From Felis catus (Eukaryota): 64,000 nt of DNA. Below, piece by piece: positions 36,322-53,722 of this stretch. The notes below the pieces were generated by a model. It was not told the origin of the DNA. It saw only the letters and a list, made by a program, of their open reading frames with translations, and searched no databases. The position numbers and the translations under genes were made by a program. Where the stretch lies: assembly GCF_018350175.1 (NCBI RefSeq), contig NC_058381.1, forward strand, positions 2,232,001-2,296,000, given 5' to 3'. The number at the start of each line of letters is the position of its first letter. Positions within the stretch are counted from its first letter, which is position 1.

Positions 36322-37565
36322 CGCCGCTGACACCCGGGCCGCGCGACAGCCGCGCTTGGCGGCACCGTGGCAACCGCGGTGCACACACACCCGGAGGGAA
36401 TAGGGCTCGGGGCTGGGGCCAGGTATGCTTTACGGCACTGCCGGGCAACGAAGCATCCCGGGCTAGGGAACTAATGACCACCGCGGTGGGAACAGAAGGA
36501 CGACGGGGTCGGGCAGGCTTGCTTTACGGCACGGCCAGGTGACGGAGTGGCTCAGAGTGGGGTGCAGACTCGGGCAGCGAGCTTTTGCGACAGTAGAAGA
36601 AACGACCGCCTCAGGCATCTTTACGACGCAGGGGGTGCTGGCCCCCACCTTCAGCTTTGCGACAGCGGCCCCAACGACCCCGCCCCCGCCGAGGCAGGCG
36701 ACGCCTTGAAGTTTTCGCTTTACGGCAACAGGAGGAGGTGTCTTCCCTTCGCGCTACACCCTTCGACGCCGTAAGAGCGGCGTCTGGAGCATCCAGAGAA
36801 GGGAACCGGTAGCTTTATAAATAAAAACCTCTGCCCTCGCACCGAGACCGGATATATTTTGCGACACTGTCGCAGTCCCTCCACTGTGTAGCGCACTTCT
36901 CGTGAGAGGCAAAGCGCGTCGACTTGGGGGGGGGGCAGGGAAGGGACTCGTGATATTCCTAAACAAGCCCACTTGAACTCCAATCTAGCCAAACCCTTAA
37001 ATTTTAAAGCCACGGATGAAGAGTCCAATGAAACCCTGGCAGGCAGATTCAAGCAATGGCACTGACGGTCCTGCCCCCAAAACCCCGAGCTATCAAGCCC
37101 CCCAGCCCAGCGGTCCGAGCTCGCGCCGAGGTTGGAGGACTATGACGTCACAATGAAGGCTTCCGCCCCATGACCGGGACCCCTGACTATGATTGGATAA
37201 TTCGGATGAAGGCGGTGATGGGGAAGAAGGGCGGGAACAAATCCCAGAGACAAAGAAAGAAGGCCTTTGGGTGGGGCAGCCGGAGGGGCCCCTAGCCCGA
37301 GGTCCCTATATAAAGTCTCGATGCCGGGGCCGCGGCTCCAGGTAGCTGAGCGGGAGGGGACCCGGGCCTCAGCCCGAGCCCCCGACCTCCACGCCCCTCC
37401 GCCCAACGCCACGGTGGGGGCGGGGCCTCGGGGCGGGGCTATGAGAAACAAGTAGGCGGAGCGGGGCGGGGCAGCTAAGAGAGGTCCCCGGATGGGGCCA
37501 GGGAGAAGCCCGAGGCTCTGGGGGCTGCCGGCGGCCGCAGTGGGGAATCCCCGGGAGAGGCGACC
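36322..37565. promoter_or_regulatory. Divergent promoter region shared by NEURL4 and the I-2-like gene
   Basis: Head-to-head start codons 1.24 kb apart. CpG-rich, with a TTTRCGRC motif cluster (36429-36875), CRE TGACGTCA (37143-37150), ATTGG (about 37191), TATATAAA (37307-37314) and GC boxes. Confidence 0.7.
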
Positions 37566-40500
37566 ATGGGTGTGTCCGGAGGAATCACGTTCGAGGCAGA
37601 CGCCGGGCCGCCCTCCAGCGTAGTCCCGTTTCACGGTTCTGGGCCCTCCCTGCACCCCGGGGGAATCGTAACTCGCAGTCCTGAATCTAGCCGGCCGTCC
37701 GGGGGCGTAGCAGTCCTCGGTTCCGGACCCAACCAGCACCCTGGGGAGGTTGCGAACCTCGGCACTGGGTCCGGCCCGTACCCAAGCGGATTACATGGCC
37801 CCTTCCCTGAAACTAGAGTATCCGGGACCTACAGGCTCGGGTCCGAGGGGTCTGGGGCGTACAACTCCGGACGCAGTCCGCGCTCCAAGTCAACTTGCTT
37901 GCACTCCCACAAACCTTGTGAGGACCGGCCCCGGAGCATCCTAAAAAGCAACGGCTCCGTCTTGATGCAGAAATCCGCCATTGCGGAGAAGTAAAGAGTT
38001 CAGCTCGGCTGGCACCCGGCTCGGAGCCCGGAGGGAGGGGTTTCGGACACTGGAGGGGGCGGGGCTAGGAGGAAGGGGCGGGGTCCTGAGAACTAGAAGA
38101 GAGAGTCGCTGAGGGCTTGGGGGGGTGGGGGGGTGGAATCTGAGCTTCCAGGCCTCCGGGAGAGCAGGTACAGGGTAAACGCTGGCTACGCCGTGTGTGA
38201 TTATCGTTAGGCGTGACCCCCGCCCTCACTGCTACGCCTCTGAGACTACGAGCGGTACAAGAAGTTTCTGAATGGAAGAAAGTGGGAGGGCTGTGAGGAG
38301 GAGGTCGCTGAAAGTTTTCCTACACCTTTCTGTGTCCTCCTACGCCAGGAACAAGTCTCAGCGGTGGAACGAAATGAATATCCTAGTCACCTACCACCCT
38401 GCTGACAAGGACTATGGATTTATGAAGGTGGATGAACCCAGCACTCCCTACCACAGGTGCTGAGCCCTCAGCCCTAACCTTTTAGCCCAGACCCTTCCCT
38501 ATTCAAAGGCAGTGGGGGAGGCAGAGAGGCCCCAGGGATTGGATACTTTCAGATGCTTGCCCCTCACCACTGCTTACTCCCTCGTCTGCAGGCTGCAGGA
38601 CAGTGATAAGGACCTGCCTGGGGCATCCTCTCCTTCAGTGACTCCGAAGGTGCTGGCCAAGAGGTGAGAGTCCTGCCAGAGGTCAGTAGGGATGTGGGGC
38701 CTCTTTCTCCCTCCACCCCTGAGCTCTGAGGTCTGAGCCAGCTCTGCTTTTTGGCCACCAAAATGGGAGGCACTACAGTTCCCATCTGGACTGACCAAGG
38801 CCAAGGTGGGGGAATTAGCCAGCTACATCTACCACCTGCCCCTCCTCGTTCTCTCTGTTTGGTGCCCGCAACCAGTCTCCCTCCTCTTCAGGTTGGCAAA
38901 AATGGACAATCTCTATCCCAAGGTCCTCCAGTATGGTGATACCAGAAGTTTGGGAGCTCCAGACCACTTTTCCAAGACACGTGAGATGAGGGGTGGGGAT
39001 TGAGCGGAAAGGGGAGGCAGAGTGAACCGTCAGCGAGAGCCTGGCCGGAAAGCCAAGCTGTTTACAATGGCCCGCAGACTCCAGTGACTTCATAAACCGC
39101 CGAAAGACACATTACGATGAAGGAAAGGTCTTCGAGACTCAGAAAAGTTTTTCCTTCAATGATAATAAGCACAACAACAAAGCAGGCCGTGCCAATACGG
39201 GCAGTGGCGGTCGGGGCATGATGCTGGACCCAGAGCCCAGGCCTGTGGAGAGAGGCCGGACAGGAGGACTGGCCAGAGGAGTCAGCGATGAGATTGACCT
39301 GGTCACCGGGAACCACATCCGAGAAGCCAAGGGTTAGCTATGGTGGAGCCCCAGGGATTTGTGGGAATTGTAGTCCAGAGTCTTTGCCATACCCTATCTT
39401 TCTCAGTGGCCATTGGCCCAGGGCCTTGCTACCTGGGAGGGAGGTAATGGCAGGTGACCCCCAGGGAAGACGGAAGGCGGGTGGGGTGGGGGCCTCATCA
39501 GAATAGTCCTCAGGAAGCCCAAGAGAACCATGGGGGATGGAGAGGTCACTGGGATTTTCTAATACGGGAAGAGGCCAGAGAAGTGAGATGAAAACCCAGG
39601 GCTGGAACTTCTCCCCTGTGGAGGGGGCCATCACGGACACCTGGGGGTCCTGGATACCCTAGGTGGCCATAAGACCCAGATGGACTCGGATGATTCGGCA
39701 GATCCCCCTGCCTTCAGAAATCAGTGCCGAGCTTCAGCCATCATCAGGTCAGGCCAGGAAAGTGGTCTGCGACAAGGAAAGGAGTATTACATCAAAGGAA
39801 GATACCTGAGGAGCTCCCCCCACCCCGAGCTCGAGGAGGACACAGAAGATGAGCATGAGGAGCAGGACAGTGAGAGCTGGGCCGGGTCAGCCTGGGGCGG
39901 GGGGGTGCTGACAACCCCAGACTGATGGGTGCCCCAGCCTTGACCCTGTGGTGTTTCCAGGCTCTGCAAACTTGAGCTGGGTGATTGAGAATCCCATAAG
40001 CACTGAGGTCCGTCTGCTGGGCCACCCAGGAAGCCCCGTTCAGGATCACAAGGCCACCAAGGACCGCCTGAAAGTGACAGTGACAAAATCGGAACCTGGT
40101 GAGGGCCCCAGGCCCCAACAGCTGGCTCTTGACAAGCTCCCATCCCCCCACCCCACCTTCTTTGCATACCAGTATACCTTCAACAGATGCTAAGAGCGGC
40201 CTCGGGCATCCTGGTGTGCAGGGCCCACGTTGTACAGAGAGGAACGAGGGAGGCTCAGAAGGGGTTGGGACCCCCTCCAGCTTGGCACTAGCTGTTGGTC
40301 CCGCGCCTCCCCCTGATTCCCCTTTGCCCCCACCCCCCTCCAGGTACCGCCCTGTCCTCCAAAGACAATGGGTCCAGATCAGAGTCAGGCTGGTGTCAGT
40401 CAGTGCCTGGTATCCAAGGGGCTCACCTGGCAAAGGCCAGAAAGCTTGGAGAGGCAGCCTGGCAGCCACCGGAAGTCCCCACAACAAAACCAAAGCAGGC

Positions 40501-40710
40501 GTGAGCCTGGGCGGGTGGGGGGCAAGGGGGCCGCCTGAACCAGCCCCGGAGAGAGGGCCTGAATGGGTGGGCTCCAGGGAGTTTCAGGGTCACGTGGGCC
40601 AGATCTCCTGCCTCCTGCAAGGAAGCCAGTAACCCAGTCATTTCTCCCCAGATGAAACCCTGCGTCTTCAATGGACACAAGAGGGGGAAGCCAATCGATG
40701 GAAAATGTAG
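37566..40710 (+). CDS. Protein phosphatase 1 inhibitor-2 (PPP1R2/IPP-2) family paralog, intron-containing, about 515 aa model
   Basis: Well-supported exons 37566-37990, 38349-38456, 38592-38663, 38892-38980 and 39078-39332 encode [39 protein letters not shown] and [12 protein letters not shown] (I-2 signature motifs). Less certain 3' exons 39702-39869, 39961-40098, 40187-40263, 40344-40500 and 40652-40710 complete a stop-free 1548-nt frame. Kozak ACCATGG; AATAAA at 40768-40773. From memory this is the position of mouse 2810408A11Rik. Confidence 0.8.
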
Positions 40711-40767
40711 CCAGCTGGGGATGGGGCGGGTCCCAGCCTCCCCCTGCCCACTGTCCTCAAGGTGGAC

Positions 40768-40773
40768 AATAAA
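40768..40773 (+). terminator. Polyadenylation signal of the I-2-like gene
   Basis: AATAAA about 60 nt after the modelled TAG (40708-40710), followed by GT-rich sequence. Confidence 0.6.
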
Positions 40774-41507
40774 GAAAAGTGTGGGAGTCTGGGTGCTCCG
40801 AGTCGTTGGCCCTGCATGGGCCTGCTCAGCCACAGAGGAGAGGGGCGGAGGGAAGGACGTCTGCATACAGGAAACCACAGCAGGCAGAGGAGCGGAGAAG
40901 AAAGCTTGGAACAGCCTGGGGCACTGGACTCAGGGAGGGCCTGGGAGGCCCAGAAGGCGCCCCCACTGCAGCAGGGGGACGGTGGTTGGTGGGACCCCAA
41001 AACCACGAATGTACCAATGTCCTCTTTAATTCCTACGACATCTCTGGGCGGGGCGGTGGGGGGGGAGGTTGTCATGCCCATCTTCCAGATGAGGAAACTG
41101 AGGAATCAGAGAGCTTGCCCAGGGTCACACAGTCTCTGAGTGACAGAATCAGGACTGGAGCCTGTATCTGCCAGTCACCCCCAGCCCCCAGCACGGCTAA
41201 AGGAGAAAAAATCGGGGAAGGGGACTCTGGTAAGAAGGGGACTGCAGATAGTCTGTGTGGGTGGGGCTGTGGCTTCTCCGCCTGGCCCCGCCTCTGCCCC
41301 TCCCAGTACTGCCTGCAAGTGTGAGGTGAGAGCTCCTCCTTGCACACCCCTAACCCTTAGGGAAGGGATTGAGCCCCCTCCCCCACCCCCAGGCTCTCCC
41401 CAGGAGAGGACCCCCCCTCCTCCTCCTCACCAACCCCTCCTGGGGCAGGGAGCGCTTCCCCCTGCAGCCCCTGCCCGTCTGACCCCCCCACCGTGCAGCG
41501 GAGCAAG

Positions 41508-53722
<12,215 letters not shown>

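Follow-up and report, generated by a model that had tools for sequence, protein, structure and literature searches.

The cat orthologue of mouse 2810408A11Rik, an intron-containing paralogue of Inhibitor-2 and probable PP1 regulator of spermatids and sperm

Introduction

In the complex of protein phosphatase 1 (PP1) with Inhibitor-2, the HYxE sequence of the IDoHA segment covers the active site of the phosphatase. The PP1 of sperm is mainly PP1 gamma-2, and this form together with its inhibitors controls sperm maturation and motility. Inhibitor-2 itself, the ubiquitous 205-residue product of PPP1R2 (PP1 complex in PDB 2O8A), carries its motifs in the order SILK, KSQ[KR]W, DEPSTPY and HY.E. Changing HYNE to AAAA in Inhibitor-2 abolishes PP1 binding and mutations in GILK and SQKW weaken it, while the inactive PP1:Inhibitor-2 complex regains activity once a proline-directed kinase has phosphorylated Thr73 (PMC11561318). 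The subject of this work is LOC102899307, a gene of the cat, Felis catus, read in a stretch of 64,000 nucleotides (the window; NC_058381.1, positions 2,232,001 to 2,296,000). Its mouse orthologue is 2810408A11Rik, and as an ancient paralogue of PPP1R2 it probably acts on PP1 in spermatids and sperm. The cat protein has the same order of motifs as Inhibitor-2 and shares with it the Pfam IPP-2 family and intrinsic disorder; it differs by about 112 extra N-terminal residues, about 180 extra C-terminal residues and one extra conserved motif.

The relatives of Inhibitor-2 recognised in humans are of another kind. A survey from 2013 described ten human PPP1R2 pseudogenes, all of them intronless (PMC3840573), in agreement with the statement of a preceding sequence-only reading of this DNA that most recognised PPP1R2 paralogues are intronless retrocopies. 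Among them PPP1R2P1, P3/PPP1R2B and P9/PPP1R2C retain SILK and KSQKW, as befits relatives of Inhibitor-2 (PMC3840573). These human copies have about the length of Inhibitor-2, whereas the cat gene is interrupted by introns, encodes long extensions and sits between NEURL4 and ACAP1. The survey makes no mention of any PPP1R2 copy on chromosome 17 (PMC3840573), and hence the paralogue treated here lay outside it.

The closest described gene is mouse 2810408A11Rik (NP_081695.2, 435 residues), a multi-isoform locus whose protein, like that of the cat, has an IPP-2 core behind a long N-terminal extension, followed by a paralogue-specific tail with the motif RKEYYxKGRYLR. The mouse IPP-2 domain is located at residues 150-277, and the mRNA was found in testis only among 14 tissues (PMC3597327). 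The mouse protein, of about 47 kD, is present from round spermatids on and is more abundant in elongating spermatids; in sperm the staining marks the acrosome, from where it is gone after capacitation, and the post-nuclear region (PMC3597327). While PPP1R2 is ubiquitous, the mouse orthologue of the cat gene is testis-specific. The paralogue would bind PP1 as Inhibitor-2 does. The overall identity of the rodent proteins to that of the cat is only about 44-50%, the cat protein starts 22 residues later and has a frame-shifted exon-8 tail, and the expression data come from the mouse only.

The gene and its Inhibitor-2 core

The gene lies on the + strand. Reading of positions 37300-41100 of the window together with a scripted frame check gave eight coding exons and a protein of 484 residues, which coincides at every residue with RefSeq XP_006939812.2 (uncharacterized protein LOC102899307 isoform X1, Felis catus); exons 2 to 7 show moreover 100% identity to a UniRef cat protein. 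The exons and the signals at both ends are the following.

37563-37569, + strand: Kozak context ACCATGG of the start codon at 37566
37566-37990, + strand: exon 1, with the ATG in ACCATGG, a disordered N-terminal extension rich in Gly, Pro and Ser, and RPRSILK near the exon end; donor AA/gtaaag
38349-38456, + strand: exon 2, with KSQRW (residues 144-148), the strongest-conserved core and the Thr-Pro site in DEPSTPY (T174-P175)
38592-38663, + strand: exon 3, phase 2 to 2, with the start of the sole confidently predicted helix (residues 196-209)
38892-38980, + strand: exon 4, with the conserved block LA.R.A.MD..PK.L
39078-39332, + strand: exon 5, with the IDoHA-type segment SSDF..RRK.HYDEGK and then a fast-evolving tail; weak donor G/gttagc
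39663-39869, + strand: exon 6, with the paralogue-specific motif (cat residues about 354-380) and then an acidic stretch
39961-40098, + strand: exon 7, poorly conserved outside carnivores
40344-40500, + strand: exon 8, 157 nucleotides in the cat; its inclusion gives isoform X1 with a frame-shifted tail of 34 residues
40652-40710, + strand: exon 9, coding in the exon-8-skipping isoform X2; stop codon TAG at 40708-40710
40768-40773, + strand: AATAAA polyadenylation signal

The strong Kozak context and the polyadenylation signal that the sequence-only reading had reported are thus both in place. That reading had proposed five exons; all five have GT-AG borders and splice in frame, but they amount to the Inhibitor-2 core only, the full model having eight. 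In the scripted check exons 1 to 5 had AG acceptors and GT donors throughout and a joined frame free of stops, and the frame runs on past exon 5 through exons 6, 7 and 8. The coding sequence contains in total seven GT-AG introns, of which four lie within the IPP-2 region or at its border. The extensions that Inhibitor-2 lacks had been put at about 120 residues at the N-terminus and about 250 at the C-terminus; both exist; before SILK the cat protein has about 112 residues more than Inhibitor-2, and 237 residues come after HYDEG.

Membership in the Inhibitor-2 family was analysed by profile scans made exon by exon against Pfam IPP-2 (PF04979, curated cut-off 25 bits). The exon-2 piece reached 60.5 bits (E = 3.6e-16) at profile positions 1-32, and the exon-5 piece aligned with positions 99-127 (E = 0.08), in the correct order. 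Since these pieces cover the start of the profile and its C-terminal part, one IPP-2 domain spans exons 2 to 5. Judged by profile comparison, family membership is far beyond chance on the exon-2 match alone. PF04979 is also precomputed on the cluster of the identical RefSeq protein and on nearly all orthologues. Exons 1 and 6 to 8 matched no family in the Pfam and NCBIfam scans. PDB sequence searches with the exon-4 and exon-5 pieces returned chance-level matches only (antibody light chains, phage spike).

The central 125 residues retain the whole set of motifs with which Inhibitor-2 holds PP1. A SILK-type motif, RPRSILK (residues 121-127), stands N-terminal of a degenerate RVxF motif; this is the counterpart of KSQKW and in the cat reads KSQRW (residues 144-148). 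The Thr-Pro site, equivalent to Thr72/73 of Inhibitor-2, is T174-P175 in DEPSTPY and is a predicted phosphorylation site, and the HYNE-type sequence of the IDoHA segment is HYDE (residues 243-246). The order of the docking elements, SILK at residue 124, KSQRW at 144, DEPSTPY at 170 and HYDEG at 243, is that of Inhibitor-2, as the sequence-only reading had claimed.

The locus is therefore a real, intact, multi-exon relative of Inhibitor-2. It is also already annotated, hence the reading was correct rather than a discovery. The idea that the gene was unstudied and unrecognised had to be abandoned, because the cat model is in RefSeq, mouse and rat have curated NP_ entries and a paper on the mouse gene appeared in 2012 (PMC3597327).

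Several alternative products are derived from the 3' half of the gene. After the splice of exon 8 to exon 9, isoform X1 meets its stop at once (A/TGA at 40653-40655); a transcript that keeps intron 8 would end at TGA 40502-40504 and give a protein identical to that of the spliced isoform X1. In RefSeq cat isoform X2 (P0193) exon 8 is skipped and the junction of exons 7 and 9 encodes the conserved C-terminal end. Read-through of the weak exon-5 donor meets a stop immediately (TAG at 39335-39337). A UniRef cat model of 312 residues, A0ABI7Y0R4, has 31 residues read from intron 7 (40099-40193), so that intron-retaining isoforms exist in the annotation. At the opposite end of the gene, the N-terminal extension encoded by exon 1 (37566-37990) contains degenerate repeats, present as four tandem copies in an orthologue (P0010).

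Conserved islands in a disordered protein

Conservation was studied in a main alignment of 48 full-length orthologues and in a second one of 86 sequences. In the main alignment the mean column identity is 36%, and against this background F236, H243, Y244, E246 and R366 are invariant. Conservation of at least 90% is found for P122, I125, L126 and K127 of the SILK motif, for K144, Q146 and W148 of the RVxF-type motif, for T174 and P175 of the Thr-Pro switch and for R240, K241 and G247. The alignment of 86 sequences recovers identical conserved islands, and in it the mean fraction of the top residue is 0.90 over exon 2.

A second conserved island is located in exon 6, with the consensus QRKEYYsKGRYLRs.shPELEED.EDE (cat residues about 354-380). 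Here R355, E357, Y358, R363, Y364, L365, P371, E372 and D376 are nearly invariant among the 48 orthologues. The RKEYYxKGRYLR motif has no counterpart in Inhibitor-2 and matched no Pfam or NCBIfam model, and motifs of this type extend from monotremes, platypus and echidna included, to placentals. As a guess, it could serve as a second docking or localisation element.

AlphaFold2, run with the orthologue alignment, gave a mean predicted local distance difference test score of 50 and a single confident helix (residues 196-209). The prediction fits an almost wholly disordered protein that would fold on its partner. Outside the motifs the sequence evolves fast.

Age and distribution of the paralogue

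A HMMER search with the exon-5 piece against 1.84 billion representative proteins gave 20 matches; all those with a species name are mammalian, and the remaining ones come from sequencing-run and metagenome assemblies. Among the species-named matches, the exon-5 tail retrieves only mammalian proteins of this paralogue. A word-indexed search started from the tiger orthologue collected 194 proteins from carnivores, cetartiodactyls, perissodactyls, bats, eulipotyphlans, rodents and lagomorphs, as well as tree shrew, colugo, strepsirrhine primates, xenarthrans and afrotherians, several of them bearing the name 2810408A11Rik.

The orthology to 2810408A11Rik, which the sequence-only reading had considered probable, was confirmed in several ways. 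The exon-5 tail and a lemur tail, used as queries, retrieve proteins of that name from Phodopus, Cricetulus, Jaculus and Nannospalax, and the Mus musculus RefSeq isoforms share a 90% cluster with the Mus caroli match (P0122). The family clusters contain mouse NP_081695.2 and Q6NSU2 (RIKEN cDNA 2810408A11 gene, now 'protein phosphatase inhibitor 2-like') and rat NP_001017476.1, the mouse and rat entries being curated NP_ records.

Platypus and echidna have proteins named 'protein phosphatase inhibitor 2-like' with RPRGILK, KKSQHW, HYDEGKFLK and R..YYSKGQYLRS. In these monotremes the SILK motif is at residue 21 and the long N-terminal extension is missing, and the exon-8 block W..WLETKGLKW is present in echidna, not in platypus. 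These orthologues date the paralogue to the mammalian ancestor or earlier. A search for non-mammalian orthologues with the echidna tail returned monotremes only; being word-limited and of low sensitivity, it is no proof of absence. Because of the seven introns and the monotreme orthologues, the comparison supports an old DNA-level duplication of PPP1R2, as had been proposed from the sequence.

The lemur-tail query, which lies beyond the IPP-2 core, gave 59 matches including Prolemur, Microcebus, Otolemur, Galeopterus and all other placental orders. Neither among these 59 nor among the 194 proteins of the tiger-seeded search was there a tarsier, monkey, ape or human protein. The proposal that the gene is lost or unannotated in humans fits this result, and for Haplorhini as a whole the protein searches fit either loss or non-annotation, at the level of annotation.

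Changes in the felid lineage

Two changes distinguish the cat gene from the ancestral felid form.

37500-37502, + strand: AGG codon in place of the ancestral ATG start, in frame; the sequence upstream of 37566 reads R-EKPEALGAAGGRSGESPGEAT
40396-40403, + strand: TCAG-TCAG, a 4-bp tandem duplication in exon 8; sequence CTGGTGTCAGTCAGTGCCTGG

Other felids keep the ancestral start, which reads MEKPE in Panthera and Leopardus and MAKPE in Prionailurus, within M-[EA]-KPEALGAAGG. In the cat this codon is AGG, and an in-frame stop is located seven codons upstream of it; therefore translation starts at 37566 and the protein is 22 residues shorter.

Owing to the TCAG duplication, exon 8 is read in another frame than in Panthera and Leopardus; the ancestral tail is thereby replaced, and the protein ends at the border of exons 8 and 9. 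Prionailurus bengalensis has the same shifted tail, while Leopardus and Panthera keep the ancestral frame. In P. viverrinus the protein regains the ancestral frame seven residues on, as if 1 bp had been lost from the G run that follows. Cat DNA samples from several studies contain all sampled sequence words of the duplication stretch. The shift being shared by P. bengalensis and the several cat samples being in agreement, the duplication is real and older than the split of Felis and Prionailurus. An assembly error as the origin of the frameshift was considered and rejected on the same grounds. Without the duplication, exon 8 would be a cassette of 153 nucleotides with phases 1-1. Isoform X2, which skips exon 8, keeps the conserved C-terminal end, and hence the frame of exon 9 is still open.

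Conservation between cat and Panthera varies along the protein: identity is 96% in exon 1 (to Panthera uncia), 100% in exon 4 and 87-88% in exon 5, and over exons 5 and 6 together 12-13% of the residues differ.

Transcripts and neighbouring genes

Felid Logan contigs of 923-1365 nucleotides contain open frames that join exons 5, 6, 7 and 9, with or without exon 8, or exons 5 and 9. As they span exons set 1.5 kb across, with introns that contain stops, these contigs must represent spliced RNA and offer indirect evidence of transcription.

The location between NEURL4 and ACAP1, given already by the sequence-only reading, was verified. NEURL4 is upstream on the - strand, with its Neuralized domains at 28-32 kb; ACAP1 follows on the + strand, its first coding exon being near 41514, about 740 bp past the AATAAA; and TMEM95 is on the + strand at 58.4 kb. 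This arrangement puts the gene head-to-head with NEURL4 but in tandem with ACAP1. The database model P0010, of 1094 residues and from another mammal, is a read-through fusion of the Inhibitor-2-like gene with ACAP1, and the linkage to ACAP1 is thus present in that mammal as well. A TATAAA at 37309-37314, about 250 bp before the ATG, is a candidate promoter element only; its surroundings, with a GC content of 0.64 and a CpG observed/expected ratio of 0.70, belong to the region common to the head-to-head NEURL4.

Discussion

The gene structure, the family membership, the orthology and the conservation of the motifs described here, together with the predicted disorder, place cat LOC102899307 beside mouse 2810408A11Rik. 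It is in our judgement quite likely that the protein acts as follows. In the cells that contain the mouse protein, namely round spermatids, elongating spermatids and sperm, it would dock on PP1 through SILK, KSQRW and the IDoHA-type segment, and PP1 would then be held inactive or handed on in the fashion of Inhibitor-2. Proline-directed kinases would re-activate the complex at the Thr-Pro site, as they do in Inhibitor-2, and the N-terminal extension and the RKEYYxKGRYLR/acidic motif may add localisation or a second partner. The binding of PP1, the role in the cat testis and the function of the extra motif are in this scheme suggested by likeness to Inhibitor-2 and to the mouse gene.

Some observations weigh against this interpretation. 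Sequence searches of the PDB with single exon pieces failed to retrieve the Inhibitor-2 chain, and the helix of the IDoHA segment was predicted with low confidence as four residues only (residues 236-239), which is no counter-argument because Inhibitor-2 folds on binding. No data on PP1 binding or inhibition by the paralogue were found in the literature for any species, the mouse paper being on localisation only (PMC3597327). The cat, moreover, is without the ancestral start codon and has the frameshift in exon 8, and its substitutions D149N and R355G affect positions that about 90% or more of the orthologues conserve, although at position 355 two related database fragments have R where the reference cat has G. 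Finally, a comparison of cat with Panthera shows 31 differences among 445 residues, most of them in exons 5 and 6, a high number for felids; 17 of these changes are derived in the cat and 9 in Panthera, and 5 are ambiguous.

The peculiarities of the cat could be read as the early decay of an unprocessed pseudogene under constraint relaxed in the Felis lineage. The ancestral ATG that is now AGG, the 4-bp duplication, the two substitutions in near-invariant columns, the 17 to 9 asymmetry with Panthera and the divergence of exons 5-6 would all agree with it. However, the eight-exon model shows no damage at any of its 16 splice sites and has an open frame of 484 codons, the next in-frame ATG carries a full Kozak context, and the frameshift dates from the split of Felis and Prionailurus or earlier with no further breakage since. 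Skipping of exon 8 retains the conserved C-terminal end in an open frame. Since the cat departs at only 4 of 81 conserved columns, with a median of 3 among the 48 species, and the asymmetry is not significant, decay is rated as improbable. Hardly more credit is given to a functional gene that has ceased to act on PP1, its core being kept for another partner and the C-terminal motif providing the main function. Among the invariant residues outside the Inhibitor-2 kit, R366 of RKEYYxKGRYLR stands out most, in a motif that corresponds to no Pfam or NCBIfam family; no report of PP1 binding by the paralogue was found, and an acrosomal signal lost upon capacitation is not described for Inhibitor-2. 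Yet the invariant or nearly invariant residues are exactly those with which Inhibitor-2 contacts PP1, namely SILK, KSQ.W, F..RK.HY.E and the T-P switch, and it is difficult to see why this pattern would be retained if PP1 had ceased to be the partner. Scarcely conceivable is a processed PPP1R2 retrocopy like the ten human pseudogenes, for which speaks that the recognised extra human copies are all intronless (PMC3840573). The seven coding introns, four of which fall in or next to the IPP-2 region, the orthologues in monotremes and the position beside ACAP1 kept in the other mammal of the fusion model P0010 all contradict it; with eight coding exons and seven GT-AG introns an origin by retrocopying is ruled out.

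The reading of the gene as a PP1-directed paralogue of Inhibitor-2 may be carried further, if only tentatively. A paralogue that goes back to the first mammals or further, equipped with RKEYYxKGRYLR and an acidic run, might be a dedicated regulator of sperm PP1 gamma-2 that was lost in the common ancestor of tarsiers, monkeys and apes, where testis-expressed PPP1R2 retrocopies possibly substitute for it. In Felis and Prionailurus the 4-bp duplication might have turned a cassette exon into a frame-switching one, so that splicing would pick between two C-termini. This extension is speculative and is regarded as doubtful.

The biology of Inhibitor-2 is currently under revision (PMC11561318), and in this setting stands a paralogue whose conservation reaches from monotremes to carnivores and rodents. 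It has all the PP1-docking elements, is restricted to spermatids in the mouse and is the subject of one descriptive paper. The remaining interest is modest and resides in the biochemistry of the protein, in its apparent loss in anthropoids and in the frame switch of felid exon 8. If its absence from monkeys, apes and humans is true, the gene would offer a clean case of the lineage-specific loss of a PP1 regulator, and results on sperm phosphatases obtained in the mouse would have to be carried over to humans with caution.

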